Shown: positions 738 to 33,040 of the stretch, in pieces | Layout of the letters: the number at the start of each line of letters is the position of its first letter | How positions within the stretch are numbered: position 1 is the first letter of the stretch | Virus record (IMG/VR): IMGVR_UViG_3300046092_000062 | Coordinates: 256,768 to 320,767 of that record | Direction: 5' to 3' (one strand) | DNA: 64,000 nt | Program-made: the position numbers and the translations under genes | Notes under the pieces: generated by a model | Seen by the model: only the letters and a program-made list of their open reading frames with translations | Databases searched by the model: none | Told to the model about the DNA's origin: nothing

Positions 738-911
738 ATGAGTAATAGAACGTGGTTTGAAGAACCGGGCGAGCCTATCGCCCCATGCGAAGATTGTCCC
801 GACCCAGGTAATTGCTGCCTGACACGATGCGGGATCCAAGAATACCTTAAAGAAGATACAGCAGATATTCGTGGCGAAACCGATGAACAGCTTCGAGGAG
901 ACTGCGAATGA
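738..911 (+). CDS. small Cys-rich protein
   Basis: strong SD; CEDC...CCLTRC; ATGA overlap with polymerase start. Confidence 0.55.
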   Translation: MSNRTWFEEPGEPIAPCEDCPDPGNCCLTRCGIQEYLKEDTADIRGETDEQLRGDCE

Positions 912-4562: not shown

Positions 4563-5297
4563 ATGCAAGACAATCTAAAAGACATCGTACAGCACACATT
4601 TGGACTAGGTTCAATTGAGTTGGTTAAAGTGACCGGCACTGCAAGCGAAACAGTCCTAAACACAATCGCCGAAGACCGTTCGGTTATTGTTGAGGCTAAA
4701 TTTAAAAACCCAGTACCAGAATTTGTTGGTACGTTTGGTATGCCTAACTTGGGCAAACTAAAAACAATCCTTAACATCGAAGTATATCGCGACGATGCTA
4801 AGTTGAGCATTAACACACAGCAAAACTCTGCAGGCGAAACTGTTCCAGCTGGTATCCACTTTGAAAACAAAGATGGCGACTTTAAGAACGACTATCGCTT
4901 CATGAGTGCAGAAGTTGTTAACGACAAACTCAAAGCAGTCAAGTTCAAAGGCGTTCGTTGGGGTGTTGACGTAGTTCCTACTATTGCTAGCATCCAGCGT
5001 ATGCGCTTCATGGCTAGTGCTAACAGTGAAGAAACTACGTTTACTGCTAAAACAGAAAACGGAGCACTCAAGTTCTTCTTTGGTGACTCGTCAAGTCACG
5101 CAGGTAACTTTGTTTTTGATAACAACGTTAGTGGCACATTGACTAAGAGTTGGTCTTGGCCAGTAGACGCAGTTATCAGCATCCTTGGATTGCCAGGTGA
5201 CAAGACCTTCAAGATCAGCGACGAAGGTGCTGCAATGATTACCGTTGATAGCGGCATTGCTGATTACAGCTACATTATTCCTGCTCAACAAAAGTAA
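4563..5297 (+). CDS. sliding clamp / polymerase processivity factor (gp45-like)
   Basis: 244 aa, two-lobed beta/alpha pattern (FGMPNLGKLKTIL; final strands ISDEGAAMITVDSGIADYSYIIPA); next to polB. Confidence 0.65.
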   Translation: MQDNLKDIVQHTFGLGSIELVKVTGTASETVLNTIAEDRSVIVEAKFKNPVPEFVGTFGMPNLGKLKTILNIEVYRDDAKLSINTQQNSAGETVPAGIHFENKDGDFKNDYRFMSAEVVNDKLKAVKFKGVRWGVDVVPTIASIQRMRFMASANSEETTFTAKTENGALKFFFGDSSSHAGNFVFDNNVSGTLTKSWSWPVDAVISILGLPGDKTFKISDEGAAMITVDSGIADYSYIIPAQQK

Positions 5298-5923
5298 TGT
5301 CTTTAGGTCATCTGATACCTAGAGGATACCGTCCCGGTAGTGGGTTAATATCCCCTACTGGGATTTTCTATCTAAGTATCCCCAAGAATGCCAGCACATA
5401 TATGACCAACTTACTGGTTGCCAATGATTGGCGCCACAATGACGTATACAGTCCCGATATTAAGGAATGTATAGTTGTTCTACGTGATCCAGTTGATCGT
5501 TGGCTTAGCGGCTTTGCAACGTATGCAGCCAGCTGGTTGCTCGGGGAAGGATACGGCAGTGATCACTTTAGGGAAGACTACAATGATCTCACACAGCGAA
5601 TCATCTTTGATCAAATTGTATTTGACGACCACACCACCGAACAAGTAAAATACGTTGAGCAACTAGGTGACCGTAAGATTACATTCTTTAAACTCAATTA
5701 CGAGTTAGGAATGAACTTAGAAAGTTTTTTAGATTGCAAGCTAGGTCTAAATAACCCTATAGCAGATAACGCAGGCGAAGACAATTACGATACTAAAATG
5801 ATTGCCAAGCACATGAGATTCAGAGTAGAACAAGATCCAGTTCTACGTGCTAAGATCATTGCGCGATATGCTGCTGACTACGAACTAATTAAAACAGCAA
5901 ACTATTACAATGAGCCAAGATAA
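5297..5923 (+). CDS. sulfotransferase family protein
   Basis: 5'-PSB-like YLSIPKNAST and 3'-PB-like VLRDPVDRWLSG. Confidence 0.75.
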   Translation: MSLGHLIPRGYRPGSGLISPTGIFYLSIPKNASTYMTNLLVANDWRHNDVYSPDIKECIVVLRDPVDRWLSGFATYAASWLLGEGYGSDHFREDYNDLTQRIIFDQIVFDDHTTEQVKYVEQLGDRKITFFKLNYELGMNLESFLDCKLGLNNPIADNAGEDNYDTKMIAKHMRFRVEQDPVLRAKIIARYAADYELIKTANYYNEPR

Positions 5924-7604
5924 TTTAACAAGCAAACAAAAAGATTACGCAGTATTCTTGCCAGCTATCAGTGGCTTCTACGGTACGTTTGTGGGCAAAC
6001 AGCGTGTTAACAATGACTATGTCGACCCAGCACGTTTCCCGCAAGGACTAACCGACATGGAGCAGATGAACTGGCTTAACGATCAAAAGGGCTTGTTCCC
6101 GTATAAGTGGAGTCTATATTCAGGTGGACATGCTAACTTGGATCTCACTAAAGAAGATGCAAGCGAAGACATGGTTCGCAAACGTGACCCAAACACTATC
6201 CTGCTAGGTGACTCGGGAGGATTCCAGATTGCCAAGGGCTTGTGGGAAGGCGAGTGGCGTGATCTTAATAGCCAAGAAGTTAAAGACAAAATGGCCGCAA
6301 TGGTAGCACTAGGTGTAGAAGTTAAGCCGGTGCTAGACAAAGCTGGTAACCCTGTTATTGGCAAGAAAGGTCCGAAGACTATCACAATCGACCATGCTAA
6401 AAACTATCAAAACTTAATTGATGCAGCACAAAAGAAACGTGGTGCTGTTCTAACGTGGTTAGATAGTATCAGCAATTACGGCATGGGATTGGATATTCCA
6501 ACTTGGGTTATCCATGACAAGAAAGCCAGCGATGCGTGTGGTATTAAAACTCTTGACGAAGCTGTTGCAGCTACAAAGTATAACAACGAATACTTCATGG
6601 CGCAACGCAAAGGCAAGAACAATGGCGGCGCTAAGTTCCTAAACGTGTTGCAAGGTGACAATCACAACAGTGCCGAAGATTGGTACCAAGTAATGAAAGA
6701 GTACTGTGATCCTGTTAAGTATCCTGATACACACTTTGATGGCTGGGCAATGGGAGGTCAAAACATGTGTGACGTACACTTGATTTTGAAACGTCTAGTA
6801 GCACTACGTTATGACAACTTACTACAAGAGGGCAAGCATGATTGGATGCACTTCTTGGGCACAAGTAAACTAGAGTGGGCTGTGTTGCTTACTGTTATCC
6901 AGCGAGCTGTGAGAAAATATGTCAATCCTTCTTTTACTATCTCTTTTGATTGCGCTAGCCCTTTTCTTGCAACAGCTAACGGCCAGGTATACTTCGAAAA
7001 CGTATTTCCGCACAACGGAAAGTGGAGCTACAGAATGGCTCCAAGTGCAGACGACAAAAAGTACGCCACTGACACACGCAAATGGTCAGACGGAGTGGTA
7101 CAAGACGGCATTTACCCACGCTGGGAAGACAGTCCCCTTAGTGACATGTTTAAAATGAAAGATATTTGCATCTACAAGCCAGGCGATCTTAATAAGATTG
7201 GCAAAGAAGGTGCAACATCATGGGACAGCTTTAGCTACGCATTGCTTATGGGACATAACGTATGGATGCACCTTACTGCGGTACAAGAAGCTAATAGACG
7301 TTTTGATGCAGGCGAACATCCTGCTATGATGCGATCAGAAAAGCCACTTGCACCTTACTTTGAAGATATTGTCGAAGCTATTTTTGCAGCACCCGATCGT
7401 GAAACAGCAGAAGAGATTATTGAAATGTACGGCGGCCCCAATGGTTACTGGACTGAGATTATTGGCACTCGTGGATTTAAAGGCAAGAAGGCAGTAAGCG
7501 CTCGCCCAATGTTTGATAAACTATTTGACGTAGAAGATCCTGTCAATGACGACGACACTGAATTCAACGAAGCAGCACTAGACAACTTAGAGGATACACA
7601 ATGA
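5910..7604 (+). CDS. dpdA: tRNA-guanine transglycosylase-like DNA 7-deazaguanine insertion enzyme (DpdA family)
   Basis: TGT catalytic motif DSGGFQ; LDIP; NVLQG; MHFLG; SFDCAS; clustered with folE/queD/queE in a phage. Confidence 0.8.
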   Translation: MSQDNLTSKQKDYAVFLPAISGFYGTFVGKQRVNNDYVDPARFPQGLTDMEQMNWLNDQKGLFPYKWSLYSGGHANLDLTKEDASEDMVRKRDPNTILLGDSGGFQIAKGLWEGEWRDLNSQEVKDKMAAMVALGVEVKPVLDKAGNPVIGKKGPKTITIDHAKNYQNLIDAAQKKRGAVLTWLDSISNYGMGLDIPTWVIHDKKASDACGIKTLDEAVAATKYNNEYFMAQRKGKNNGGAKFLNVLQGDNHNSAEDWYQVMKEYCDPVKYPDTHFDGWAMGGQNMCDVHLILKRLVALRYDNLLQEGKHDWMHFLGTSKLEWAVLLTVIQRAVRKYVNPSFTISFDCASPFLATANGQVYFENVFPHNGKWSYRMAPSADDKKYATDTRKWSDGVVQDGIYPRWEDSPLSDMFKMKDICIYKPGDLNKIGKEGATSWDSFSYALLMGHNVWMHLTAVQEANRRFDAGEHPAMMRSEKPLAPYFEDIVEAIFAAPDRETAEEIIEMYGGPNGYWTEIIGTRGFKGKKAVSARPMFDKLFDVEDPVNDDDTEFNEAALDNLEDTQ

Positions 7605-8104
7605 TCAGAGAAGGACACGAAGAAGTTAGATTCTTTCAAGGCAAGGAAGTAGAGCATACTCCTGCATTTGGAAAACAAACTCTATTTGTAGTGGGCGTAC
7701 AGCCATTAGCAGATATTGCCCTAAACCTACGCGGTGCGGACCATATCTACTTTGGTGCCAACATGAGCTTTCCCAATCCTGCAATAAACGATCCAGTTTG
7801 GAACGATTGGGAAAATATGATTCGACCCTTCTTGGATAAAGGGTACACTTGTACGCTAGATATTGACTCGAAATGTGCAGAAGGATTGCTAGAAAGTTCT
7901 CTGTGCGAGCATCATAACTTCATCCCAATGATTTCGGTGAAACTGCCGTATTTACAACAGCTAGGTTATAATGCTACAATCAAGCTAGATGACAAAGACT
8001 TTGCAGCAACTAACCCCGGTGTTTGGTGCCACAGTGTTCACAACCTTATGGATCGAAAAGTATTTACTGATTGGTCCAGCTATACGAAAGACGAAACTTT
8101 ATGA
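7601..8104 (+). CDS. hypothetical protein coupled to dpdA
   Basis: ATGA overlap; alpha/beta pattern (TLFVVG, HIYFGAN, CTLDID). Confidence 0.75.
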   Translation: MIREGHEEVRFFQGKEVEHTPAFGKQTLFVVGVQPLADIALNLRGADHIYFGANMSFPNPAINDPVWNDWENMIRPFLDKGYTCTLDIDSKCAEGLLESSLCEHHNFIPMISVKLPYLQQLGYNATIKLDDKDFAATNPGVWCHSVHNLMDRKVFTDWSSYTKDETL

Positions 8105-8286
8105 ACAATCTCAGTAAAGAGCAGTTACGTCTTGTGATTGCAGAAATGCGCCCAGACATCTCAGACAGCGACTTTGAAGCTATGTGGGAAGAAATGCAAA
8201 CTGCATGTACTACTCACTACTCAGAAGTAGCAAACGAAGTCATTGACTTACATACCACAACCGACTCACAAGGAATTATTAGATGA
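8101..8286 (+). CDS. hypothetical protein
   Basis: ATGA overlaps at both ends. Confidence 0.55.
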   Translation: MNNLSKEQLRLVIAEMRPDISDSDFEAMWEEMQTACTTHYSEVANEVIDLHTTTDSQGIIR

Positions 8287-8732
8287 GCCAACGAGACCAA
8301 GCACTAGCAGATAAGCGTGAGCGTATCATGCAACGTGCAGACCGACAAATTTGGGTAACCTTCAAGAAAGAAGGCATTCACAAATACCCAGCAGCAGCAA
8401 CAGACCCAGCACTAGCAACAGGCGACGAATATGATGTTTCGTTCCTTGGCTTGCCACATCGTCATATCTTTCACTTCCGTGTATGGATTGACGTGTTTCA
8501 CAATGACCGCGACATCGAGTTTATCCAATTTAAACGTTGGCTTGAAAACTTGTATGCCGGCGGTACGCTAGAGCTCAACTTTAAGAGTTGCGAAATGATT
8601 GCAGATGATTTGTACACACAAATCAACACAAAGTATCCTGACCGCAGTGTCTGGATTGAAGTTGCCGAAGATGGTGAGAACGGCGCTTTAATTAAATATG
8701 AATCTCACCGCCCACAACTGATTAGTATCTAA
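8283..8732 (+). CDS. dpdL: QueD-paralog T-fold protein (DpdL-like, proposed CDG decarboxylase)
   Basis: LGLPHRHIF matches LxxxHRHxF; SCEMIA resembles the QueD T/S-xE-x-I/L-A motif; separate canonical queD present. Confidence 0.65.
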   Translation: MSQRDQALADKRERIMQRADRQIWVTFKKEGIHKYPAAATDPALATGDEYDVSFLGLPHRHIFHFRVWIDVFHNDRDIEFIQFKRWLENLYAGGTLELNFKSCEMIADDLYTQINTKYPDRSVWIEVAEDGENGALIKYESHRPQLISI

Positions 8733-8743: not shown

Positions 8744-9007
8744 ATGGCAAACGAACACCTGCAAAAGTACTTGAAGATGAAACCTGAAGTTTCTCGTCTA
8801 TTCAATGACCTCGAAGAGTACTTGGCGTTCTGTAAGAAGCAGGGCTACGTCTATGACGAAAGCCACCTCTACAACGAGAAAACACCGTGGGGCGAAATGC
8901 AGCGAGTTAAAGCTGGCAAGTTCCCTAAGGACAATTGGAGTCCATATCCAAAAGAGCGTCGCGAGTTTAAGCCTCGTGACAAAAACAGCAACTGGAAGTA
9001 CCGCTGA
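8744..9007 (+). CDS. hypothetical protein
   Basis: SD AAGGA; in operon. Confidence 0.7.
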   Translation: MANEHLQKYLKMKPEVSRLFNDLEEYLAFCKKQGYVYDESHLYNEKTPWGEMQRVKAGKFPKDNWSPYPKERREFKPRDKNSNWKYR

Positions 9008-9009
9008 TT

Positions 9010-9417
9010 ATGAGCGCCGCAACTGACATGGGCCAAGCAGAGTTTGACCTACAACGGGTCATGGATCTGTTTGACACTGCCCTAACCAGTAAAGATGAGC
9101 GTGTAGTAAACGCCCTTCGCAGTCTGTTGATGATTGTGGCGCTTACCAATCCCGAAGACGCCGATGCTAAAGGTGATATCGGTCCACTACGTGCAATGGA
9201 ACGTGATTTAAATTCCATGCACAGTCGTATTCGCAGTCTAGAAGACCAAGTACGCCATATTACTGATGCACTGTCTCAGCACAATACCGCTGCTCAATCA
9301 TATAACTCGTATAACTGGCGACCATCTAACCCTTATGCGAGAGATGTGTGGGGACAGGATAAGAGCAATATCACCATGCGCGATTACTTCACAAAAATTA
9401 ACGGAGGTCCCATTTAA
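9010..9417 (+). CDS. hypothetical coiled-coil protein
   Basis: heptad segment LRAMERDLNSMHSRIRSLEDQV; TAATG junction. Confidence 0.65.
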   Translation: MSAATDMGQAEFDLQRVMDLFDTALTSKDERVVNALRSLLMIVALTNPEDADAKGDIGPLRAMERDLNSMHSRIRSLEDQVRHITDALSQHNTAAQSYNSYNWRPSNPYARDVWGQDKSNITMRDYFTKINGGPI

Positions 9418-10595
9418 TGGGTAAGCTATATTACATGGGGTTAGAGAGTTACAAAGCTCGCTACACCCTGCAACTAACAGAATGGAACAAACGTGTCTTT
9501 GATCGCCGTGGCGTTGAAGCAGTATATGTTCCAGGTCTAACACTAGATAACAGTCAAAAGATTGTTACAGGACAAGTACTGGACGCACACGGTCGCAGCT
9601 ACTTTGGTATGAGCCAGATTATGAATTTGGTTCGATTAATGCAACAAGGAGCAGTGACTAAAGATGATGTTGTATATTTCGAAGACATGTTCCAACCAGG
9701 AATCGAAAGCCTACCCTACATCCTTAAACAAATCCCAGAGGCGTCGCGCCCAAGAATCTTTGTTCGTTGTCTCGCTCAGTCTATTGACCCTGACGATTTC
9801 GTACATGTTTGGGGAATGGGTGAATTTATGGGTCACTATGAACGCATGGTGGACAGCTTTGTTGATGGTGTGTTGGCCACTAATGAAGAAATGGTAATGC
9901 ACATGAAGATTGCAGGTTGGAAATCACCAATCTACAATATTTCAGGATTGGTGTTTAACACCGAAGAAGTGCAAGAGCGGGTGGGTAACAAGATTACTCC
10001 CTGGAATGAGCGCAAGCCCCGCGTGGTATTCTCTGCACGTTGGGACCAAGAGAAGCAACCAGACTTCTATATGGATGTAATCGAATCATGGCACAAACGT
10101 CATCCCGGCTCAGGCGTGGAGTTTGCAGTATGCTCGGGTGCAACACTAAAGAGCAACAATGACAGCTACATGAAGCGCACACGTGATATGCAGGCAGCAG
10201 GCTCGTTGACCATTTACGAAGACCTAGAAAAGAATCAGTACTATGACATTGTTAATAACTCTCGTGTTGTTTTTAATTGTGCATTACAAGATTGGGTCTC
10301 CAATACTGTCTCCGAAGCTGACGCTTTGGGATGCAATGTACTTTATCCTGCTTATCGTTCTTTCCCTGAAACTTTTGCAAACGATCATACTCGCATGTAC
10401 GTTCCGTGGAGCATAGATGACGCATTAGACAAGTTGGAAAAACTGTTGCAGAAGCCAAGTGAGAACATGGGCAAGATTAGCGCATGGACTAGTGGCACCG
10501 CTGATCGCATTGTTGACATTATTGAAGGCAAGGGCGAAAAGTGGTTGCGTATGTCAACTGACTATCGCAAACATACACATGAGTCTAAGTACTAA
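9417..10595 (+). CDS. GT-B fold glycosyltransferase (GT4-like)
   Basis: VVFSARWDQEKQP; VSEADALGCNVLYP; SFPE, typical of the nucleotide-sugar-binding domain. Confidence 0.8.
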   Translation: MGKLYYMGLESYKARYTLQLTEWNKRVFDRRGVEAVYVPGLTLDNSQKIVTGQVLDAHGRSYFGMSQIMNLVRLMQQGAVTKDDVVYFEDMFQPGIESLPYILKQIPEASRPRIFVRCLAQSIDPDDFVHVWGMGEFMGHYERMVDSFVDGVLATNEEMVMHMKIAGWKSPIYNISGLVFNTEEVQERVGNKITPWNERKPRVVFSARWDQEKQPDFYMDVIESWHKRHPGSGVEFAVCSGATLKSNNDSYMKRTRDMQAAGSLTIYEDLEKNQYYDIVNNSRVVFNCALQDWVSNTVSEADALGCNVLYPAYRSFPETFANDHTRMYVPWSIDDALDKLEKLLQKPSENMGKISAWTSGTADRIVDIIEGKGEKWLRMSTDYRKHTHESKY

Positions 10596-10764
10596 ACAAG
10601 AAATTTGGTTAACATTGGCTGGGGAGCAATACCCCAGCCTTAACGAAGACCAACTAAAGGCACTAAGCCTAAAGGCCGCCAGCGAGTGGTACTTGGGCGG
10701 TGACCCAGAGTTGGTCAACTTGTTTGATCAATACGTAATGCTAAAGAACATAAGGGGAGTGTAA
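10579..10764 (+). CDS. hypothetical protein
   Basis: fills operon gap; TAATG junction to next gene. Confidence 0.5.
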   Translation: MSLSTKQEIWLTLAGEQYPSLNEDQLKALSLKAASEWYLGGDPELVNLFDQYVMLKNIRGV

Positions 10765-11429
10765 TGGCTAAGTGGAGCATTGAAGCAGAACAGAAGAAAA
10801 GCGCACTAGAAGTTCAACTATGGTTTAAAGACGGCCAAACTATTCGTAAAACCGAAGGCTACCGTTGGGGCACGTTTGTTTGCGAAAGCGATGAGCGGCC
10901 CGATATCGATCTAGTTAACGAAGATAACGATTACCGCGTTGACGACGACGGCAACGACTGGGAGCTAGATAGTCTTAATGATGGTTGTTGGACTGATTGG
11001 GAATTCCCTGATGGTATGCCCAAGGAAGAGCAAGAACGTCTACAAGCACTATGGAACGAACTATGGTACGAAGGTCTTGAAAGCGAAGGATGGAGCCAAA
11101 ACGAATGCGAATACTATTTAAATGGCCCATTGCGACTGACTAACGTAGACACTGGTGAAGAATGGTTAGGATCAACTGACCCTGCCACTGTTGTGCATAC
11201 TATCGAGTTACCTACTGTGGCACCAGAACCATTGCTAACTGATTGGTTCCCTGCTAAAATTAACCCCGTACACAAAGGCATCTACGAATGTGAGATGTCT
11301 GAAGTTGATGCTTGGCCTTATCCAAAACAACTAATGTTGACTTGGACTGGTAAAGCATGGAAAGATGATGGTAAGTCCATTAAAGAAACCGTTAAGCAAT
11401 GGCGCGGCCTTGCTAGCGAACCTAAATAA
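10764..11429 (+). CDS. acidic, Trp-rich hypothetical protein
   Basis: SD GGGGAG; 221-aa ORF. Confidence 0.7.
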   Translation: MAKWSIEAEQKKSALEVQLWFKDGQTIRKTEGYRWGTFVCESDERPDIDLVNEDNDYRVDDDGNDWELDSLNDGCWTDWEFPDGMPKEEQERLQALWNELWYEGLESEGWSQNECEYYLNGPLRLTNVDTGEEWLGSTDPATVVHTIELPTVAPEPLLTDWFPAKINPVHKGIYECEMSEVDAWPYPKQLMLTWTGKAWKDDGKSIKETVKQWRGLASEPK

Positions 11430-11449
11430 TCATTAACTAAGGAAATAAA

Positions 11450-11632
11450 ATGACAAATCTACAACCACTATTTGACGCATACTTGGCAGAAAACGAAAAA
11501 TTCGAAGCCGGTAACAATGCAGCAGGCACTCGTGCTCGCAAAGCATTGCAAGAACTTGCTAAAGGCGTAAAAGCTCGTCGCAACGAAATTACCGAAACTA
11601 AGAACGCACGAGCAGAAGCTAAGAAGGCCTAA
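11450..11632 (+). CDS. histone H1-like Hc1-family nucleoid protein
   Basis: KFEAGNNAAGTRARKAL motif characteristic of the Hc1-like family; SD AAGGA. Confidence 0.7.
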   Translation: MTNLQPLFDAYLAENEKFEAGNNAAGTRARKALQELAKGVKARRNEITETKNARAEAKKA

Positions 11633-12616
11633 ATGTCAAAGACCGTTATTGTCACTGGCGGATGTGGGTACATTGGTAGTCACGTTGCACGGGCTTTCAA
11701 ACAAGAAGGCTACGCCGTACACATTGTTGACACTGTTTACCGTGAACACACTGTCAAGGACATTGACGGTCATTTGATCAATTGCTTTGCTAGCAAAGCT
11801 GCACTCAGCATGTACATCATGCTGCAACCAGACATTATTGTGCATTGTGCAGGCACTAGTCTAGTTGGTCCAAGCATAACTAATCCAGCAGAGTATTACG
11901 ATAACAACGTTAGTAAGACTATTAAGATGCTGGATGTCTTAAAGGATTTACCAAAGCGTCCCACTATTATGTTTAGTAGTAGCGCCAGCGTGTATGGCGT
12001 CCCTAAAGAATCACCGATAACAATAAACAGCCCCTTACAGCCAATTAGCCCATACGGTTCAACTAAGATGATTGTTGAGCAAGTGCTAAAGGATTACGGC
12101 AGTGCATATGGATTCAACACCATTTGCTTTAGATATTTTAATGCTGCCGGCGCAGCGGCAACTGGTGACTTAGGGCAAGAACCTGATGCAACACATCTAG
12201 TTGCACGTACAGTTGAAGCAAGCCTAAGCGGCAGATTAGTTACTATCAATGGTGACGACTTTGACACACTAGATGGTACCTGCGTTCGTGACTACGTACA
12301 CGTTTGGGATATTGCCGTGGCACACACTAAGGCAGCGGAATTCTTTGCTATCCATTATGGCCCAGACACCATTGCTGGACATCATGTGTTTAACTTAGGC
12401 ACTGGTAGCGGGTACAGTAACAAGGAAATTGTTGACTACGTTTACGAAACATACGGATTGACTACAGTCAAGTATGGCCCACGTAGACCCGGCGACCCAG
12501 ACTTATTAGTAGCAGATCCATCGGTAGCTAACTCAGTATTGGGATGGTATCCAATTAACAGCAGTATAAAAAACATCATTGATACAGCATATAACTGGTA
12601 CAAGAATCGTGTTTGA
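11633..12616 (+). CDS. galE: UDP-glucose 4-epimerase
   Basis: TGGCGYIGSH, FSSSASVYG, YGSTK, RYFNAAG, DGTCVRDYVHV, RRPGDP. Confidence 0.9.
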   Translation: MSKTVIVTGGCGYIGSHVARAFKQEGYAVHIVDTVYREHTVKDIDGHLINCFASKAALSMYIMLQPDIIVHCAGTSLVGPSITNPAEYYDNNVSKTIKMLDVLKDLPKRPTIMFSSSASVYGVPKESPITINSPLQPISPYGSTKMIVEQVLKDYGSAYGFNTICFRYFNAAGAAATGDLGQEPDATHLVARTVEASLSGRLVTINGDDFDTLDGTCVRDYVHVWDIAVAHTKAAEFFAIHYGPDTIAGHHVFNLGTGSGYSNKEIVDYVYETYGLTTVKYGPRRPGDPDLLVADPSVANSVLGWYPINSSIKNIIDTAYNWYKNRV

Positions 12617-13214
12617 TAAAATTAAGAAATTTGAACTTGCGCTAGCAGAATTTACTGGCGCACCATATGCAATCATGACCGATTGCTGCACACATGCAAT
12701 TGAACTGTGCCTACGATATGATAAGATCACTGAGTGCTCATTCACTCCTTACACGTATTTGAGCATCCCAATGACAATGCACAAGCTAGGCATCAACTAT
12801 AGCTACTTTCCAGACACGTTACCACATCGTCAACAATGGGTTGGTGAATACAAGTTTGAAGCTACTCGAATTTGGGACAGTGCAAGACGACTAGAAGAAA
12901 ACATGTACCGTCCGGGAATGATGCAATGTTTAAGTTTTGGACATACAAAGCCTTTACACATTGGCCGCGGTGGTGCTATACTACTAGACGACAAGTCAGC
13001 ATATGATGCGTTAATTTTAATGCGCTATGATGGACGCGACCTAAATATTAAACCATGGGAATCTCAGAAAGAATTCAGAGTTGGGTATCACTATAAACCC
13101 ACGCCAGAAGAAGCAGTACAAGGACTTGCACTACTACAGGGCGTTAAGGTTAATAAACCCAAACCAGTAACAGTTGAGTACCCAGACCTAAGAACAATCA
13201 CTATCAAGGACTAA
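12609..13214 (+). CDS. short DegT/DnrJ/EryC1/StrS-type PLP-dependent enzyme
   Basis: FELALAEFTG, DCCTHAIELCL, IWDSAR, SFGHTKPLHIGRGG (PLP Lys); only ~201 aa; GTG start chosen. Confidence 0.75.
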   Translation: MFDKIKKFELALAEFTGAPYAIMTDCCTHAIELCLRYDKITECSFTPYTYLSIPMTMHKLGINYSYFPDTLPHRQQWVGEYKFEATRIWDSARRLEENMYRPGMMQCLSFGHTKPLHIGRGGAILLDDKSAYDALILMRYDGRDLNIKPWESQKEFRVGYHYKPTPEEAVQGLALLQGVKVNKPKPVTVEYPDLRTITIKD

Positions 13215-13215
13215 A

Positions 13216-13917
13216 ATGACAGATACAAGTAAAAACTTATCACAAGTTATTCGCGACAAGATGCGAGCAGACAACAAACGCTTCTGGGCGGGCGACAACA
13301 TCAGTGAGTATGTTGGCGAAGAAGAAAAAGAATCGTTAATTAGCGAAGCAGCAGAAGCATTTGAAAAAGTACTTGACACACTATTGATTGACCGCGAAAA
13401 TGATCCGAACTCAAAAGGCACAGCAAGGCGTCTTGCAAAAATGTACTACAACGAAATTATGGCTGGGCGGTACGATGCAAGCCCTAGCGCAACTGCGTTT
13501 CCCAATGATAGCGATGGCGCATACGACGGAATGTTGGTTGTGCGCAGTGAGCTTAAAAGCATGTGTAGCCACCATCACCAACCTGTTACGGGTGTGGCTT
13601 ACATTGGCATTATTGCTGGACAGAAACTCATCGGACTATCGAAGTATACCAGGATTGCACAGTGGTGCGCAAGACGAGGAACACTACAAGAAGAGCTCTG
13701 TATGGACATCGCTCGTGAGATTGAACTTGCAACTGGATCACAAGACGTTGCAGTTTATATTCAGGCTACCCACGGATGTTGTGAGAATCGTGGTATCATG
13801 GCTCACTCTAGTCTTACTCAGACCACAGTACTACGCGGAGCCTTTAAAGAAGACGCAAGCGTAAAGAAAGAGTTCTTTGACAACATCAAATTGCAACAAG
13901 AGTTTGCACCACGCTAA
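13216..13917 (+). CDS. folE: GTP cyclohydrolase I
   Basis: SMCSHH, IGLSKYTR, LQEEL, HGCCENRG. Confidence 0.95.
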   Translation: MTDTSKNLSQVIRDKMRADNKRFWAGDNISEYVGEEEKESLISEAAEAFEKVLDTLLIDRENDPNSKGTARRLAKMYYNEIMAGRYDASPSATAFPNDSDGAYDGMLVVRSELKSMCSHHHQPVTGVAYIGIIAGQKLIGLSKYTRIAQWCARRGTLQEELCMDIAREIELATGSQDVAVYIQATHGCCENRGIMAHSSLTQTTVLRGAFKEDASVKKEFFDNIKLQQEFAPR

Positions 13918-13926
13918 GGAAACAAC

Positions 13927-14142
13927 ATGAACGCCGCAGACATGACAACAGCACTAATCAATCGTGCAAAGGTATTAAACGAGTTTATGGTCACTACTGA
14001 AGTGCCCAACGACTTTAGATTCAACGGGATGGTGCCATTTGATATGCAAATTAAAGATGGTATTATTTACGCACATGTTTGGGGCGTTGACTTTGACGAA
14101 GCGTGTATGCGTTTAGATCAATTTTTAGACACCTGCAAATAA
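13927..14142 (+). CDS. hypothetical protein
   Basis: SD AAGGA; in operon. Confidence 0.65.
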   Translation: MNAADMTTALINRAKVLNEFMVTTEVPNDFRFNGMVPFDMQIKDGIIYAHVWGVDFDEACMRLDQFLDTCK

Positions 14143-14914: not shown

Positions 14915-15249
14915 TTGCACTACCACCAGGATGCACTGTAACCTATGCAGTATGGATTGACGTTAAGGAAATGACCACTGAACTTATCGAGTGGTGCGAA
15001 CTAGTTGGTGGCCGTAAGAAAGTCGACAGCTACTACAATCATCGTGGCAACAAAGTCGATACAGAGTACATTGCATTTGGAAAAGCCAAGTGGTGTCACT
15101 ATCATCAAAATGGCAATGGTGGTGTACGCCTACACTTTCACGGCGACGATGCTTCAACTGCGAGCATGTTCTTGCTCAAGTTTATGGACAACGTAACCGC
15201 ACACAATTTAAAAGAAGTACAAGATAGAGTAGAACATGGATTTGTTTAA
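14911..15249 (+). CDS. hypothetical protein (dispersed small phage family)
   Basis: ATGA overlap; RLHFHGDDASTASMFLLKF motif. Confidence 0.65.
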   Translation: MIALPPGCTVTYAVWIDVKEMTTELIEWCELVGGRKKVDSYYNHRGNKVDTEYIAFGKAKWCHYHQNGNGGVRLHFHGDDASTASMFLLKFMDNVTAHNLKEVQDRVEHGFV

Positions 15250-16057
15250 AGGACCAGTGCCGCGACTGTTTGGGCACAAAGATAGTTTAAAAGATAACAA
15301 GTTTTTTGCATCCAACAAGTTTGTTATTAACCAACAGTTTGAAGCATTTACTAACATCTGTCCGCATCGCGGATTTCCTATTTTGCAGCCATCTGGTGTA
15401 GCAGACAACATGCGCTGCGAGCTACACGGATGGCAATGGAACGATGACGGGACACCTGCTAATAACTCAGCGTGTTTAAAGCCACGTAGGCTCACAGTAG
15501 GCAAAAGCGGGCTGATGTTTATGGACTGGCAAGAACCCTCTGATGCTAAATGGGTTAACGATTTGGCTAATGATTCGTTTACGTATAGTCATAGCACACG
15601 CCGAACTGGCACCGGTGATTGGAAGTGGCAAATGGAAATGCACGTGGATCTGCTGCACGTTGACAAGATTCATCCTTTGCTAACCAGTTACGTAGATATA
15701 AACAAACTTCAAACTGAATACGGTAGTGATTGGGTGTGCCAGCACCACGAACACGGATGGTGGTTATTTGTGTATCCATTTACTCATATTGAATGGGAAC
15801 CAGGATGCTTGTACTTTAGTGAAATGGTGCAGACAAACTACGGGTACGAGGTATACATCCATTACTTGTTTAACGAGTCTACTCCGCAGCATGTGCGTGA
15901 AAACTTTATCAAAGTAGCAGAAGTTACATTCGACGAAGACGTGGACGCAGTTAATCGACTATCTCTAAACAATAAATACAGAACACCATCAAAAACTCTT
16001 GACCCACTGGAAGTAGATATTAAGCACTTCTATGATTGGTATAAGGCAAACACATAA
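15236..16057 (+). CDS. Rieske non-heme iron oxygenase alpha-subunit-like protein
   Basis: Rieske CPHRG...CELHGWQW; mononuclear Fe motif EMHVDLLHVDKIH; distal ED. Confidence 0.85.
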   Translation: MDLFKGPVPRLFGHKDSLKDNKFFASNKFVINQQFEAFTNICPHRGFPILQPSGVADNMRCELHGWQWNDDGTPANNSACLKPRRLTVGKSGLMFMDWQEPSDAKWVNDLANDSFTYSHSTRRTGTGDWKWQMEMHVDLLHVDKIHPLLTSYVDINKLQTEYGSDWVCQHHEHGWWLFVYPFTHIEWEPGCLYFSEMVQTNYGYEVYIHYLFNESTPQHVRENFIKVAEVTFDEDVDAVNRLSLNNKYRTPSKTLDPLEVDIKHFYDWYKANT

Positions 16058-16950
16058 TGTACTGTAGAAACAATTGGCTCACTTATTCGTTTGGCGGAAA
16101 CCCTCGCCGTATTCGCGATGAGGATCTTACTGTACAATTTACTGAGCAAGCAGATAAGATAATTCCTCTAGACGAAGTAGCGCAAGCGACTGCAAAAGAA
16201 ATACACTCATTATACCCAGACATTTATGTTGCAATGAGCGGAGGGTGCGATAGCGAGTATGTAGCAAAGAGTTTTAAGGCCGCCGGAGTTCCATTTAAAG
16301 CCATTACAATGACTTGTAAAGGATACCTTGTAATCGGCGAATGGTATACTAAAAAATGGTGCGACGAAAATGATGTTGAACTAATCAAATTCGAAGTTGA
16401 TCCGTTTGAATTATTAGAATACGGTAAACGCACTGTGGGAAGAATCAAGGGCATTAGCTGGTTTGGCTCCACTGTTAATTTAGTAGCAAACGAAGTAGAA
16501 CGACGAGGGGGTTACTTAGTAACCGGAGCATTGCCATCGTACTACCCTGATCCAAAATTAAGATTAGACAAAGCAGATCCTGAATTTGTTAAAACATTTC
16601 GTGGATTCATGTTTGACGAAAGTGACTTCTACATAGAATTAGTAAACCCAAATAAGCATCCTTGGGCGTTCTTTTACTGGTCGCCCGAAATGTTGGCTAG
16701 TGTGATATACCATTGGGACACTTCTCAGCCAGTAGAGGACAACAAATGGCGCATGTTTAATGTGCTGCCTAGACCAAAACTAACTGGTTGCGAATTCTTC
16801 ACGCACAATCATATAGCCAAGACTCTTCCCGAGTACAACAATTATTTCAAATGGACGTATGCTCACCGCTCACTAAAATGGGGCGCGAGAGATTTTGCAC
16901 CTTGCCCTGACAGAGAAGAATTCTTAAAAATATTATGTCGGCCCCAATAA
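16057..16950 (+). CDS. PP-loop (adenine nucleotide alpha-hydrolase-like) protein 1
   Basis: VAMSGGCDSEYVA; C-terminal HPWAFFYWSPEML. Confidence 0.7.
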   Translation: MYCRNNWLTYSFGGNPRRIRDEDLTVQFTEQADKIIPLDEVAQATAKEIHSLYPDIYVAMSGGCDSEYVAKSFKAAGVPFKAITMTCKGYLVIGEWYTKKWCDENDVELIKFEVDPFELLEYGKRTVGRIKGISWFGSTVNLVANEVERRGGYLVTGALPSYYPDPKLRLDKADPEFVKTFRGFMFDESDFYIELVNPNKHPWAFFYWSPEMLASVIYHWDTSQPVEDNKWRMFNVLPRPKLTGCEFFTHNHIAKTLPEYNNYFKWTYAHRSLKWGARDFAPCPDREEFLKILCRPQ

Positions 16951-17789
16951 CAATTAGTGCCGGTCATAAGAACTGGTACTCAGTTACTCTAACGCCATTG
17001 CAGCATCCAGAGACTTCTACAGTCAGTATGAGCTTTGGTCACACAGAAGTCGATGGTACGCTAACTTTCCAAGCTGCGGCCGATTATACTGCAAAGTTAA
17101 TTGCGGCTCAATGCTCTAATCTCTATCTAGCAATGAGCGGAGGGCTTGACAGTGAGTTTGTAGCCGAAGTACTTTATCGCAATGGTATTCAATTTACTCC
17201 AATTGTTGCGATAACGCCCGACAACGTAGAAACTCATTGTGCATTGCACTGGTGCAAATTGCATAACTTAGATCCAGTGATACTTACATTTGTTGAAAAC
17301 GATCCTCGACTGATTAGACAGTTTAGATTAATAGCAAAAGAATTAAAACAAGCAACAGGCTTATCTAATATAGTGGCTTACTTAGCAGAGTACGTTAAAG
17401 AACTAGGTGGACAATTATTAGTAGGTGATAGCCCGTTTGGCGGCCCTACTAGCAGTTATTACCAAGCGTCTGGTGAAATATTTGAAATTGATTGGCACTC
17501 ATTTATTACAGAATTTATGCAACCTAATTCACATCCCGGTGCCTTCTTCCAGTACACCCCAGAGTTGTTTTTGGCTATGGCAAAAGAGCTTAATATCACT
17601 ATTAGTGAATCTGCAGGCAAGGCTGAGTTGTATGAAATTCCGTTTAAGCCCAAGGACCCAAACCCGGCTCTTCCTATATCACTAGCAGTTAGTAAACAGT
17701 TAGCAGAATTTGCAGGTGTAGGTATGTATTGTTTCTTCCCGCCGCTTAAATGGCACAAAGACCAATTGATTAAGTTATTGTCAAAATGA
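16935..17789 (+). CDS. PP-loop protein 2
   Basis: LAMSGGLDSEFVA; HPGAFFQYTPELF. Confidence 0.7.
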   Translation: MSAPITISAGHKNWYSVTLTPLQHPETSTVSMSFGHTEVDGTLTFQAAADYTAKLIAAQCSNLYLAMSGGLDSEFVAEVLYRNGIQFTPIVAITPDNVETHCALHWCKLHNLDPVILTFVENDPRLIRQFRLIAKELKQATGLSNIVAYLAEYVKELGGQLLVGDSPFGGPTSSYYQASGEIFEIDWHSFITEFMQPNSHPGAFFQYTPELFLAMAKELNITISESAGKAELYEIPFKPKDPNPALPISLAVSKQLAEFAGVGMYCFFPPLKWHKDQLIKLLSK

Positions 17790-18634
17790 AAATTGGACAC
17801 AACGGCTGGGCGTCTATTAACTTAGAAAGAGATAACCTAGTAAACATAACAGCACCCTTTGAATTCACTACTACCGCTGTGCCTGTAGCAATGACATTCA
17901 CCAAAGCTGCTGATTACACTGCACAGTTAATTGCAACCAAGTACACTAACCTGCACTTGTGCCTAAGTGGTGGACTTGATAGTGAGTTTGTGGCTAAAGT
18001 GTTGGTTAGAAACAGCATACCATTTACCCCAGTAATAGTGGCTGCTGACTATGTGGATGCAGAAAATTGGTACGCTTACAAATTCTGCCAAGACAATAAG
18101 TTAACTCCGCTGGTATTAGATTTTGCTGGAAAAGAAAAGCATATCGAGTTAGTTAAGATGCTCATTGCACATGCACACAAACATTGCTTACCATTTGATA
18201 GATCATTGATTGTAAACGTTGTTGCTACCCTACTACCAGAAGCGCATATAATAACGGGATACGGAGATCCTGTACATGTTTCGTCTACGTTTTACGAGCC
18301 AATTGGCCCATTGGTAGAATTAACAGACCACGATTACTTTCTGGACGTAGAATACGGAACTAAACACCCCGGTGCATTTTTTTCGTATACTCCCGAGTTA
18401 TTTGCTTCTTTGATTAAGGAGCTTGATATAACCAAAAATAGTCAAATGGCAAAAGCCGAACTGTATGGTATTCTGTGTAGATCAAAAATACAATCATCCT
18501 TTTTTAACTTTTACCATTTACCCGAACTTGAATTTATTATCAAAAAGAGTTTAGACAAATTAGGTAAAAACCCACTACACCAAGCGTTCTTTATAAATAG
18601 AGATACACTACTCAATCAGTTAAGCGGCCTTTAG
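17786..18634 (+). CDS. PP-loop protein 3
   Basis: LCLSGGLDSEFVA; HPGAFFSYTPELF. Confidence 0.7.
   Translation: MKIGHNGWASINLERDNLVNITAPFEFTTTAVPVAMTFTKAADYTAQLIATKYTNLHLCLSGGLDSEFVAKVLVRNSIPFTPVIVAADYVDAENWYAYKFCQDNKLTPLVLDFAGKEKHIELVKMLIAHAHKHCLPFDRSLIVNVVATLLPEAHIITGYGDPVHVSSTFYEPIGPLVELTDHDYFLDVEYGTKHPGAFFSYTPELFASLIKELDITKNSQMAKAELYGILCRSKIQSSFFNFYHLPELEFIIKKSLDKLGKNPLHQAFFINRDTLLNQLSGL
18592..18599 (+). promoter_or_regulatory. T4-type late promoter
   Basis: exact TATAAATA ~95 nt upstream of queD. Confidence 0.5.
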
Positions 18635-18695: not shown

Positions 18696-19193
18696 ATGAC
18701 ACCCGTTCAATACAAATACACCAGTACCAAAGAGTACCACAACGCCTTTCCTGTTGCTTACAGACAATGGCGAGCAGACAGCCACTGCAATCTAATTCAC
18801 GGCTATGCGTTTAGCATGAAGTTCTATTTTGGAACCAATGACCTAGACGTTCGTAACTGGGCTGCTGACTACGGCGGCCTCAAGGAACTGAAGAAAACAC
18901 TAGAAGATCAATTTGACCATACATTGATTGTGGCACAGGATGATCCAGAAATGGAAACATTCAAATTGCTACAAGAAAAGAACATGGCCAAGATTGTAGT
19001 GTTGCCAGCACTAGGTTGCGAAGCACTAAGCGATATGCTTTACAAGTATGTCAATGGCGTTTACATTCCTGAGATGTGGGGACCAGGTGAAGCGGCACGT
19101 TTATGGTGCTATCGCGTTGAAGTACGTGAAACACAGAGCAACATGGCGTACCGCGAAGGTCACCGTGAATGGAATGAGGACTTGTTTGCATGA
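18696..19193 (+). CDS. queD: 6-carboxy-5,6,7,8-tetrahydropterin synthase
   Basis: HCNLIHGY, DYGGLK, FDHT, GCEAL, VEVRET. Confidence 0.88.
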   Translation: MTPVQYKYTSTKEYHNAFPVAYRQWRADSHCNLIHGYAFSMKFYFGTNDLDVRNWAADYGGLKELKKTLEDQFDHTLIVAQDDPEMETFKLLQEKNMAKIVVLPALGCEALSDMLYKYVNGVYIPEMWGPGEAARLWCYRVEVRETQSNMAYREGHREWNEDLFA

Positions 19194-19684: not shown

Positions 19685-20557
19685 ATGTTTGGAACAAATG
19701 AAATTATTGGTAAGAAGTATTTTAAGGATGCTCCGGCAGACAGCTTGTTTGTAACTAGCATGTTCTTTACACTACAAGGCGAAGGTCCTTATGCAGGTAT
19801 GCCCGCATTGTTTATTCGATTGGCTAAGTGTAATCTAGTGTGCAGCTTCTGTGATACATTCTTTGACGACGGTGATTGGATGACGTACGATCAAATCGAA
19901 GGCAAAATGTATGCAGCTATCAACGACTATTGGAACAACCAAGGCAAAGCAACGCCAACATGGGCAAACAATGGGTTAAATAACTATCCCGGTATTGTGT
20001 TGGTAATGACTGGCGGCGAACCTCTCCTGCAGGAGAACATTAGTGCATTTATGACACGTCAACTTGCACATTTCAAGGCAGTTCAGGTCGAAAGTAACGG
20101 CATTCCTGTTACTGATGTTCCTGCCGGTGTAACGCTAGTGTGTAGCCCTAAATGTGCTGAGAAAGATGGCAAGGCCATCAAGTACTTTGCGCCGTCGGCA
20201 ACTATCCTGCAACGTGCAGACTGTTTGAAGTTTGTTATGAGTGCGGATGCAGATAGTCCGTATAACAGCGTACCGCAGTGGGCACATGACTGGAAGGCAG
20301 CAACAGGCAAAGAGATCTATTGCAGCCCGATGAACGTGTACAACAGTTTCCCACAGAAGATCAAATTGCTTCGTGCAGAAAAAGGCAACATCACAATGGC
20401 TGAACGCAGCACAGTTGATGAAGTTATCAGCTTCTGGGAACCGGGCTTGTTGGACTTGAAAGCTAACCAAGCTAACCATGAGTACGCTGCACACTATTGC
20501 ATCGAACATGGTTTCAAACTCAACCTGCAAATGCACTTATATGCGAGCCTAGCATAA
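19685..20557 (+). CDS. queE: 7-carboxy-7-deazaguanine synthase (radical SAM)
   Basis: TLQGEG, FIRLAKCNLVCSFCDT, TGGEPLLQ, VESNG, CSPK, LNLQMH. Confidence 0.93.
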   Translation: MFGTNEIIGKKYFKDAPADSLFVTSMFFTLQGEGPYAGMPALFIRLAKCNLVCSFCDTFFDDGDWMTYDQIEGKMYAAINDYWNNQGKATPTWANNGLNNYPGIVLVMTGGEPLLQENISAFMTRQLAHFKAVQVESNGIPVTDVPAGVTLVCSPKCAEKDGKAIKYFAPSATILQRADCLKFVMSADADSPYNSVPQWAHDWKAATGKEIYCSPMNVYNSFPQKIKLLRAEKGNITMAERSTVDEVISFWEPGLLDLKANQANHEYAAHYCIEHGFKLNLQMHLYASLA

Positions 20558-33036: not shown

Positions 33037-33040
33037 CACT

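Follow-up and report, generated by a model that had tools for sequence, protein, structure and literature searches.

The genome of an uncultured jumbo phage encodes a predicted GT-B glycosyltransferase within its 7-deazaguanine DNA modification genes, and members of the same glycosyltransferase family lie beside the genes for this pathway in 12 sampled phage lineages. These phages may therefore make a sugar-bearing deazaguanine, a kind of DNA base that has not been described. The gene was found in a 64,000-nucleotide stretch of IMG/VR record IMGVR_UViG_3300046092_000062 (positions 256,768 to 320,767 of the 320,767-bp genome), which we refer to as the window and whose coordinates are used throughout. 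An earlier note, made from the sequence alone, had described a GT-B enzyme three genes after dpdL, a galE shortly before folE, and a single ThyA-fold gene with the dUMP-specific Asn, and had inferred that the glycosyltransferase may add a sugar, for example from UDP-Gal, to the deazaguanine base. We confirmed the observation in each of these elements, whereas the interpretation is only partly supported, as the genomic linkage favors it but the acceptor and the donor remain inferences.

Gene content of the cluster

The ORFs given here with coordinates all lie on the plus strand. The glycosyltransferase (GT; 9417–10595, 392 aa) is the third ORF after a DpdL homologue (8283–8732), a QueD-like T-fold protein and proposed CDG decarboxylase that is identified here from sequence alone. 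DpdL carries LGLPHRHIF at residue 55, in agreement with the LxxxHRHxF signature that replaces CxxxHGH (PMC10516641); it matches phrog_17812 (E 6e-37), is 58% identical to the ACP17 DpdL and 37% identical to the phiST DpdL, and has homologues in 28 phage records that include these two. Between DpdL and the GT lie an 87-aa ORF (8744–9007), which has no family hit but is present in 75 of 80 related loci, always between DpdL and GT, and a 135-aa ORF (9010–9417) whose stop overlaps the GT start, which gives only a weak sub-threshold TelA hit and was seen in 12 of 82 loci. Downstream of the GT, a 221-aa acidic ORF (10764–11429) is present in 24 related loci, and its C-terminus matches phrog_26541 (E 2e-9). 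GalE, the UDP-hexose 4-epimerase (11633–12616), scores 287.8 bits against TIGR01179, above the cut-off of 262.3, matches Pfam Epimerase (E 6e-46), and has GxxGxxG at residues 9–15 and YGSTK, the YxxxK motif, at residues 141–145. It is separated from FolE, the GTP cyclohydrolase I (13216–13917; PF01227, E 5e-40), by a 211-aa mini DegT-like ORF (12579–13214) that resembles PLP sugar aminotransferases. This ORF gives a partial match to DegT_DnrJ_EryC1 (E 1e-13), has an SFGHTK lysine motif at residue 119, and is conserved in 16 loci. QueD, the CPH4 synthase of the PTPS family (18696–19193; Pfam PTPS, E 1e-14), and a QueE-like radical SAM CDG synthase (19685–20557) follow, and are 53% and 43% identical to their ACP17 counterparts, respectively; the latter matches NCBIfam QueE models at E 5e-19, below the equivalog cut-offs. 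The genome has no QueC.

The DpdA role proved harder to assign, as no Pfam TGT match (PF01702) exists anywhere in the genome. It appears to be filled by a 564-aa ORF (5910–7604) that returns no Pfam, PHROG or NCBIfam hit and is recognizable only by its predicted fold. An AlphaFold2 model of this protein (pLDDT 85) was used to search the PDB with Foldseek, and all of the top 50 hits are tRNA-guanine transglycosylase (TGT; E 5e-9, probability 1.0). Homologues sit next to QueE/QueF/FolE in PA5oct and Vibrio phage 2.275.O. The adjacent 167-aa ORF (7601–8104) has no family hit and an Atlas lead below 0.9; it is present in 31 related loci and is 33% identical to an ACP17 ORF that lies between FolE and the TGT-like gene of that phage. 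The single ThyA-fold gene in the whole genome contains GVPFNVASY, with the dUMP-type Asn, and the genome thus has no ThyA-fold hydroxymethylase that would provide a hydroxymethyl-pyrimidine acceptor of the T4 kind.

Predicted structure of the glycosyltransferase

The AlphaFold2 model of the GT has a mean pLDDT of 96 and a pTM of 0.93, and shows two Rossmann-like halves with an interdomain cleft. Foldseek and VIA-align both place it among retaining GT-B enzymes of the GT4 type. The top Foldseek hits are MshA, BshA, LmbT and OtsA (E 1e-12; probability 1.0 to MshA, BshA and glycogen synthase), and VIA-align matches include MshA, BshA and sucrose-phosphate synthase, with Z up to 26.6 over about 340 residues. 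By sequence, the window protein gives only sub-threshold hits to Glycos_transf_1 and Glyco_trans_1_2 (E 6e-5 to 7e-5), the former at 22.9 bits against a gathering cut-off of 26.4, while 63 of 125 family members match Glycos_transf_1 at E ≤ 1e-3 (best 2e-10).

Residues consistent with an intact enzyme are nearly invariant over these 125 diverse members. In the donor domain these are R208, E212, K213, K272 and the motif D292-x7-E300, which is E-x7-E in ACP17, PA5oct and Phosso; their roles are inferred from position. The loops of the N-domain cleft carry a separate set (E10, R15, Y16, T17, D56, R60, D90, D124, D127 and E142). One homologue contains an intein immediately before the catalytic motif. 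In 80 related IMG/VR loci the GT is more conserved than the DNA polymerase (median identity 76% against 60%), although these loci were picked as the best GT matches, which favors the GT figure.

The structure does not single out a DNA acceptor. T4 alpha-GT (1y6f) ranks only 24th in the VIA-align comparison (Z 21.4), and small-molecule GTs score higher (Z 23–27), among them UDP-glucose:tetrahydrobiopterin glucosyltransferase (BGluT) of Synechococcus PCC 7942 (5zer; rank 9, Z 23.4, rmsd 3.7, 310 residues aligned), within the general GT4 continuum. The family is also acidic overall, with a median pI of 5.8 and a net charge of −7, although bulk charge is not decisive for DNA binding. It is therefore conceivable, although we consider it unlikely, that the GT glycosylates a small molecule that does not end up in DNA, such as a pterin or tetrahydropterin side product of FolE and PTPS-like enzymes, with the acceptor supplied by DpdL, a PTPS/QueD paralogue expected to bind pterins or purines as free molecules (PMC10516641). 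In line with this, cyanophage BUCT-ZZ01, which carries a member of the family, infects the very host in which BGluT was found. However, a family profile search detected no sequence similarity to BGluT, DpdL lacks the catalytic Cys of PTPS/QueD (Leu in LxxxHRHxF), and no sepiapterin-reductase-like gene is shared by the clusters. Furthermore, the GT is tightly associated with TGT-fold genes and QueE in phages of Pseudomonas, Acidovorax, Xanthomonas, Burkholderia and Sinorhizobium, hosts from which pterin glycosides are not known to have been reported.

Distribution of the glycosyltransferase family

To ask whether the GT is distributed independently of dpdA, which the earlier note had named as grounds for rejecting its inference, we examined the family across isolated phages and metagenomic contigs, and the outcome favored the note. 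This distribution is the new result of our analysis. The family comprises 776 clusters at 50% identity and is essentially virus-only (relatives are about 100% viral). Its members lie within a few kb of DpdL, a TGT-fold gene and FolE/QueD/QueE in 12 sampled lineages, including PA5oct, ACP17, Phosso, Xanthomonas X1, BCSR5 and BUCT-ZZ01. In the 80 IMG/VR loci the order PolB, p4563, TGT-like, DpdL, p8744 (the 87-aa ORF), GT, FolE, QueD, (QueE), GalE is kept, with DpdL present in 70 of 70 and the TGT-like gene in 64 of 64 loci with enough upstream flank. In BUCT-ZZ01, ACP17, the PA5oct group, Phosso, X1/BUDD and BCSR5 the GT lies within 0–3 kb of DpdL inside FolE/QueD/QueE clusters, at only 18–64% identity to the window GT. 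The same holds for 3 of 5 distant metagenomic members, and a fourth sits near QueD.

It is also possible, although doubtful, that the GT acts on an unrelated acceptor, such as a phage or host protein, lipid or cell-envelope glycan, and sits in the cluster only because early DNA-metabolism genes are co-located. GT4 enzymes commonly act on lipids and glycans, and the window holds a large sugar-tailoring toolkit away from the cluster that, with GalE, could serve such a glycan: an SDR dehydratase-like gene, a PseC-like aminotransferase, a GNAT, a NanM-like O-methyltransferase, a carbamoyltransferase and an APS-kinase-like gene. A divergent branch of the family, the PhiXhv-12 group, sits beside GlmS and a deacetylase rather than dpd genes. 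On the other hand, adjacency to DpdL recurs in lineages that share little else, from Kyanoviridae and Busanvirus to Arenbergviridae and a 469-kb Sinorhizobium phage, and it survives rearrangements of gene order. In the phage collection, the tblastn hits of all three GT queries outside the PhiXhv-12 group fell only in records that also carry DpdL.

The GT and the small phiST-type DpdA3 show no overlap: among 18 DpdL lineages, 12 have the GT and the other six, including phiST, whose DNA is plain dDG, carry the small DpdA3 instead. This pattern would also fit a scenario, which we regard as an unlikely alternative, in which the GT belongs to the pathway but the sugar is not retained, so that the final DNA base is plain dDG. 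The GT might transiently derivatize the free base or an intermediate so that the large TGT-like enzymes can use it, or equally it might substitute for what DpdA3 and its neighboring genes do in phiST-type phages. The GT-less phages do carry genes around DpdL that the GT-positive ones lack: a MazG-like pyrophosphohydrolase and an ATPase-domain ORF in phiST, a dNMP kinase in D479, and a shared ORF of about 185 aa in four of the six. In addition, co-expression of ACP17 dpdL and dpdA alone gave no dDG in E. coli, and the authors suspected missing enzymes (PMC10516641); the GT lies between those two genes, which is compatible with a role in the pathway under either reading. Against a transient role, no known base-exchange or decarboxylation route uses a glycosyl handle, and the linkage of GalE in the window's lineage together with a second GT-B gene in the BUCT-ZZ01 cluster suggests a glycan that is built up and kept.

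GalE linkage is specific to the window's lineage, where GalE lies within 9.5 kb downstream of the GT in 34 of 36 related loci and directly after it in 18. BUCT-ZZ01 has a GalE elsewhere in its genome, and Phosso, X1 and ACP17 have none. UDP-Gal, the donor given as an example in the earlier note, is therefore at best a lineage-specific one.

A proposed pathway to a glycosylated deazaguanine

The explanation we favor, with a probability of about 0.5, is that the GT is a catalytically intact, sugar-nucleotide-dependent, retaining-type enzyme whose family is dedicated to the DpdL branch of phage 7-deazaguanine DNA modification. In this view FolE, QueD and QueE would make 7-carboxy-7-deazaguanine, which in the absence of QueC would be processed further by DpdL (a proposed decarboxylation to 7-deazaguanine), and the TGT-fold protein would exchange guanine in phage DNA for the deazapurine. 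The GT would add a hexose to the deazaguanine-derived base, either on the free base before exchange or on DNA afterwards, and in this lineage the hexose would probably be galactose or another 4-epimer supplied by the phage GalE. The resulting base would shield the DNA from host nucleases. Our analysis establishes the predicted fold, the conserved catalytic and donor motifs, the identities of the genes, and their tight and repeated genomic linkage, whereas the deazapurine acceptor, the attachment atom, the sugar and the timing relative to base exchange are inferred, as are catalysis, any binding of DNA by the GT, and the presence of a deazapurine in the virion DNA of this phage.

Two published observations lend some support to this proposal. 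PA5oct, which has TGT-like, GT and DpdL in a row, has a modified G of undetermined chemistry (PMC12191111), and sugars are added to a 7-deazaguanine derivative in tRNA as mannosyl- and galactosyl-queuosine (PMC12518689). The chemistry counts against it, because 7-deazaguanine, the base expected from FolE, QueD, QueE and DpdL without QueC, has no hydroxyl, and the analogy with 5hmC glucosylation does not transfer directly. A retaining GT4-type enzyme would have to use N2, O6, a pyrrole carbon, or a substituent that DpdL chemistry leaves in place, and none of these has a precedent in this fold class that we could test. No oxygenase or other hydroxyl-installing gene is shared by the GT-positive lineages, and phiST DNA, made with DpdL, is plain dDG. 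A more far-reaching form of the proposal, which we put forward tentatively, is that phages of at least a dozen lineages (PA5oct-like Pseudomonas jumbo phages, ACP17, Xanthomonas X1/BUDD, BCSR5, Phosso, BUCT-ZZ01 and a very abundant group of environmental phages that includes the one studied here) replace guanine by a glycosylated 7-deazaguanine, made by a dedicated GT-B enzyme working with DpdL and a large TGT-fold transglycosylase, with the sugar perhaps further tailored in the window's lineage. Such a base would be, as far as is known, the first sugar-bearing purine analogue in any DNA, and it would require glycosyl transfer to a non-hydroxyl position or a new DpdL chemistry.

Comparison with known systems

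T4 alpha-glucosyltransferase (AGT, CAZy GT72) and other phage DNA glycosyltransferases acting on 5hmC/5hmU are likewise phage-encoded and placed among DNA-modification genes, and the GT shares the GT-B fold and retaining-type architecture of T4 AGT (rmsd 3.8 over 321 residues); a cyanophage "DNA alpha-GT" ranks 14th in a search of BFVD. There is no sequence similarity, however, as no AGT (PF11440) or BGT (PF09198) hit was obtained at E ≤ 0.01 for the window protein or at E ≤ 1e-3 for any of the 125 members, and the pathway linked to the GT makes a purine analogue rather than a hydroxymethyl-pyrimidine. The retaining GT4 enzymes for small acceptors (MshA, BshA, LmbT and sucrose-phosphate synthase) are the best overall structural matches (Z 24–27), and the C-terminal donor domain is weakly detectable by sequence, but the N-terminal acceptor domain has no sequence match outside the phage family and carries its own nearly invariant E-x4-RYT, D56, R60, D90, D124, D127 and E142 set. 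BGluT is a retaining GT-B enzyme whose acceptor is made from GTP via FolE and a PTPS-family enzyme, while the phage family is linked to QueE and TGT-fold genes and not to pterin reductases. The animal queuosine glycosyltransferases QTMAN and QTGAL add a sugar to a 7-deazaguanine derivative already in a nucleic acid (PMC12518689). QTMAN is a GT4-type GT-B enzyme. In queuosine the acceptor hydroxyls are on the cyclopentenediol, which the phage pathway cannot make, and no DUF3524/GTDC1-type N-domain was detected in the window protein or the family.

Also close are the phage 7-deazaguanine systems with DpdL, of the Cellulophaga phage phiST type (Cui, Hutinet et al. 2023, PMC10516641), the description of which does not mention a glycosyltransferase in its main text (no occurrence of "glycosyl"). 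The window shares with them FolE, QueD, QueE and DpdL with the LxxxHRHxF motif, the absence of QueC, and a TGT-superfamily enzyme, here by predicted fold. The phiST-type phages use a small DpdA3 (259–422 aa) and have no GT, whereas this window and 11 other lineages have the GT together with larger, different TGT-fold proteins.

A predicted GT-B glycosyltransferase within a deazaguanine gene cluster

The window represents the last 64 kb of a 320,767-bp IMG/VR virus record, a jumbo phage estimated to be 92% complete. Genes from 908 to 40,740 run on the + strand, beginning with a family-B DNA polymerase (908-3577) and continuing with nucleotide- and DNA-metabolism genes; no alternative genetic code was needed, and no sequence resembling human DNA was met. 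The ORF at 9417-10595 (392 aa), the glycosyltransferase (GT), gives only sub-threshold Pfam hits to GT4-type C-terminal domains, and neither PHROGs nor NCBIfam returned a match. A megablast search of positions 9000-14000 against phage records likewise found nothing. An AlphaFold2 model built on 125 diverse homologues is very confident (pLDDT 96, pTM 0.93) and shows a two-domain GT-B. A Foldseek search with this model finds retaining GT-B enzymes first (MshA, BshA, glycogen synthase, LmbT and OtsA; E about 1e-12), and an exhaustive structural scan gives Z scores of 26.6 for sucrose-phosphate synthase, 25.9 for BshA, 23.4 for UDP-glucose:tetrahydrobiopterin glucosyltransferase (BGluT) and 21.4 for T4 alpha-glucosyltransferase. 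The donor-domain motifs R208, E212, K213 and D292-x7-E300 are kept. In one homologue, the 726-aa protein P0268, an intein-like insertion of about 350 residues splits the GT exactly before the conserved ALQD (D/E-x7-E) motif; inteins typically sit in conserved active-site regions.

The surrounding genes are those of a deazaguanine pathway. The ORF at 8283-8732 carries LGLPHRHIF, which is the DpdL signature LxxxHRHxF of Cui, Hutinet et al. (PMC10516641), and it is homologous to DpdL of ACP17 and phiST; the GT is the third ORF after it. The gene at 11633-12616 is a GalE that scores above the NCBIfam equivalog cut-off and has the NAD and YxxxK motifs. FolE (13216-13917), QueD (18696-19193) and QueE (19685-20557) follow, while the genome has one ThyA, with the dUMP-type Asn, and no QueC. 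The earlier note, which had described a GT-B enzyme three genes after dpdL, a galE shortly before folE, and a single ThyA-fold gene with the dUMP-specific Asn, was therefore correct in its observation. Overlapping the end of GalE is a 211-aa mini DegT-like ORF (12579-13214, + strand) that keeps the SFGHTK PLP-lysine motif and is conserved in 16 related loci. Between FolE and QueD (15236-18634, + strand) lie a Rieske-domain ORF and then three tandem paralogous PP-loop (SGGxDSE) proteins of about 285 aa, which occur only in the closest relatives (loci L003, L006 and L010). None of these matches Pfam QueC, and they may be amidating or ligating enzymes acting on the CDG carboxylate.

A Pfam search for tRNA-guanine transglycosylase (TGT) across the whole genome was empty, which is explained by a DpdA-like protein that is detectable only by its predicted fold. 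The 564-aa ORF at 5910-7604, two genes upstream of DpdL, has no family hit, and a profile of its family against PDB sequences gave 0 hits. Its homologues, however, lie beside QueE in PA5oct and beside QueF and FolE in Vibrio phage 2.275.O, and its AlphaFold2 model (pLDDT 85) matches tRNA-guanine transglycosylase in all 50 top Foldseek hits (E 5e-9, probability 1.0). By predicted fold, the cluster therefore does contain a DpdA-like transglycosylase, one that is beyond sequence detection.

Linkage of the GT to DpdL across phage lineages

The GT family is large but unannotated, with at least 8,000 clusters at 90% identity, 776 clusters at 50% identity with E<=1e-3, and more than 599 IMG/VR contigs. 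Relatives with a known taxon are about 100% viral. In 80 IMG/VR loci the order PolB, p4563, TGT-like, (167-aa ORF), DpdL, 87-aa ORF, GT, FolE, QueD, (QueE), GalE is conserved, and among loci with enough flank DpdL is present in 70 of 70 and the TGT-like gene in 64 of 64. In those loci the GT is the most conserved gene of the region, at a median of 76% identity against 60% for the polymerase, although the loci were chosen as the best GT matches, which inflates the GT figure somewhat. The gene p4563 (4563-5297, + strand) is a conserved 244-aa ORF (phrog_12062) that always sits between PolB and the TGT-like gene, and its PA5oct homologue is annotated as a virion structural protein found by ESI-MS/MS. 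An Atlas look-up of the 167-aa ORF gave only a lead below 0.9, which was not used.

Far more telling are the independent lineages. The GT lies directly beside DpdL in cyanophage BUCT-ZZ01, Acidovorax phage ACP17, the PA5oct group (TGT-like, GT and DpdL in a row) and Sinorhizobium phage Phosso, and within 3 kb of DpdL in Xanthomonas X1/BUDD and Burkholderia BCSR5, in every case inside FolE/QueD/QueE clusters. Of five distant metagenomic members whose contigs were examined, three have DpdL adjacent, one has QueD nearby, and one shows nothing in the 12 kb available. The deazaguanine cluster of Synechococcus phage BUCT-ZZ01 (locus L001, 7093-10353) also holds an annotated xanthine-guanine phosphoribosyltransferase between QueE and QueD, and a second GT-B-like ORF (447 aa) lies next to its TGT-like gene.

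The sampled DpdL-bearing lineages fall into two groups, as 12 of the 18 have the GT and the other six (phiST, MA9V-3, D479, Ahp1, RHph_I1_18 and Bakedbeans) lack it anywhere in their genomes, as checked with a profile search that included positive controls. All six encode the small phiST-gp042-type DpdA3, which none of the GT-positive lineages has, so that the two genes are mutually exclusive among the DpdL phages sampled (compared between loci L088, L086, L089, L090, L092 and L093 and loci L001, L002, L083, L085, L087 and L091). GT-positive phages instead carry larger TGT-fold proteins of at least three types. The phiST-type clusters also carry other genes next to DpdL, namely a MazG-like pyrophosphohydrolase and an ATPase-domain ORF in phiST and a dNMP kinase in D479, which may point to a nucleotide-level route in those phages. 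In Vibrio phage Bakedbeans (locus L089, 7245-8396) and Chryseobacterium phage MA9V-3 (locus L093, 7431-8312), DpdL is the C-terminal domain of longer proteins (383 and 293 aa, respectively) whose N-terminal parts have no family hit. While phiST DNA is fully substituted by plain dDG, PA5oct has a restriction-blocking modified G that was not identified (PMC12191111). The mass given for dDG in PMC10516641 is 267 Da as [M+H]+. In ACP17, the GT lies between dpdA and dpdL, the two genes with which dDG could not be reconstituted.

GalE and other sugar-related genes

In the lineage of the window, GalE lies within 9.5 kb downstream of the GT in 34 of 36 loci, and directly after it in 18. We considered whether GalE is a universal partner of the GT and rejected this, as Phosso, X1 and ACP17 have none. 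BUCT-ZZ01 has an epimerase elsewhere in its genome, and PA5oct has only a short Rossmann fragment. GalE is thus a lineage-specific supplier, consistent with a UDP-hexose 4-epimer as donor here, and not part of the core module.

The window holds further genes of this kind. At 37304-41557, DHFR and ThyA are followed by a second sugar-nucleotide module comprising an SDR (best hit dTDP-glucose 4,6-dehydratase, below cut-off), a PseC/DegT-type aminotransferase, and a GNAT on the opposite strand. Together with a NanM-like sugar O-methyltransferase at 22966-24060, these could make a tailored amino-deoxy sugar, which may or may not be used by the GT. On the - strand at 45119-47581 are an APS-kinase-like P-loop ORF (45119-45541), a cytidylyltransferase-like ORF (45538-45909) and a NodU/CmcH-type carbamoyltransferase (46094-47581), which, with a weak sulfotransferase-like ORF at 5297-5923, hint at sulfation or carbamoylation of a sugar or another small molecule. 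Apart from these genes, five tandem paralogous radical-SAM proteins (431, 402, 438, 449 and 463 aa) occupy 50001-56544 on the - strand, three of them with a SPASM-type Fe-S hit at the N-terminus, an unusual array for a phage. The segment at 31900-35729 (+ strand) encodes a MoxR-type AAA ATPase, a DUF2201 metallopeptidase/VWA protein and a BI-1 (Bax inhibitor) family membrane protein.

Possible acceptors of the GT

The analysis shows, from the predicted structure and sequence conservation, an intact retaining-type GT-B with a conserved donor site, the role of which is inferred from position, and a family-specific, nearly invariant set of acidic, basic and aromatic residues on the N-domain loops that face the cleft (E10, R15, Y16, T17, D56, R60, D90, D124, D127 and E142). 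That the acceptor is the deazapurine made by the neighboring genes is our inference, to which we assign a probability of about 0.5. Either the free base or DNA could be the species that is glycosylated and, because 7-deazaguanine has no hydroxyl, the candidate attachment positions are N2, O6, a pyrrole carbon, or a substituent that DpdL leaves in place in these phages. A search for an extra conserved gene that could install a hydroxyl found none shared by the GT-positive lineages, which counts against this reading, as does the acidic character of the family. The proposal of the earlier note, that the GT may add a sugar such as one from UDP-Gal to the deazaguanine base, is partly supported: the association with the deazaguanine system is strong and recurrent, whereas the acceptor, the sugar and the presence of a sugar in the DNA remain inferences. 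Complex prediction of the GT with DpdL returned a score of 0.00, which is not evidence either way and is not used here.

The fold match also does not favor DNA glycosyltransferases. We rejected the idea that the GT is specifically similar to T4 alpha-glucosyltransferase (AGT), as AGT ranks 24th within a continuum of GT4 folds and a cyanophage DNA alpha-GT ranks 14th in BFVD. A profile of the GT family against PDB sequences gave only weak C-domain GT4 hits, with no AGT, BGT or BGluT. One alternative is that the product is a small-molecule, pterin-type glycoside; BGluT is structurally as close as any DNA glycosyltransferase. It is also possible that the GT has a role internal to the deazaguanine pathway that leaves no sugar in the final DNA, or that it acts on an unrelated acceptor. 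A further point against our main reading is a divergent branch of the family that lacks the E-x4-RYT motif and sits next to GlmS and an LmbE-like deacetylase in PhiXhv-12-type phages. In Xanthomonas phage PhiXhv-12 (locus L103, 6735-9969), this paralogue lies after GlmS and an LmbE/BshB-like deacetylase, with QueD about 90 kb away, and it may belong to a different glycosylation system.

Comparison with known DNA modification systems

If a new base is made by this module, it would be widespread in the environment given the abundance of the family in metagenomes, and relevant to restriction evasion, modification-sensing defense nucleases, sequencing artefacts and enzymatic DNA-labelling tools. 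The GT also offers a candidate explanation for two loose ends in the literature: the unidentified modified G of PA5oct-like therapeutic jumbo phages and the failure to reconstitute dDG with ACP17 dpdA plus dpdL. Several of the phages that carry it are cultured.

The module works like a phage DNA-hypermodification pathway, and by gene content it is a member of the DpdL-type deazaguanine clusters. The GT is a GT4-like GT-B and not a member of the T4 AGT or BGT families. The main text of PMC10516641 does not mention a glycosyltransferase, and full-text literature searches found no report of a glycosylated deazaguanine in DNA, phage DNA included; the only sugar-bearing 7-deazaguanines that we could document are mannosyl- and galactosyl-queuosine in animal tRNA (PMC12518689). 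Both the glycosylation of hydroxymethyl-pyrimidines in DNA and the replacement of G by sugar-free 7-deazaguanine are already known, and a glycosyltransferase tied this consistently to the DpdL branch of the deazaguanine pathway points to a modification class that combines the two.
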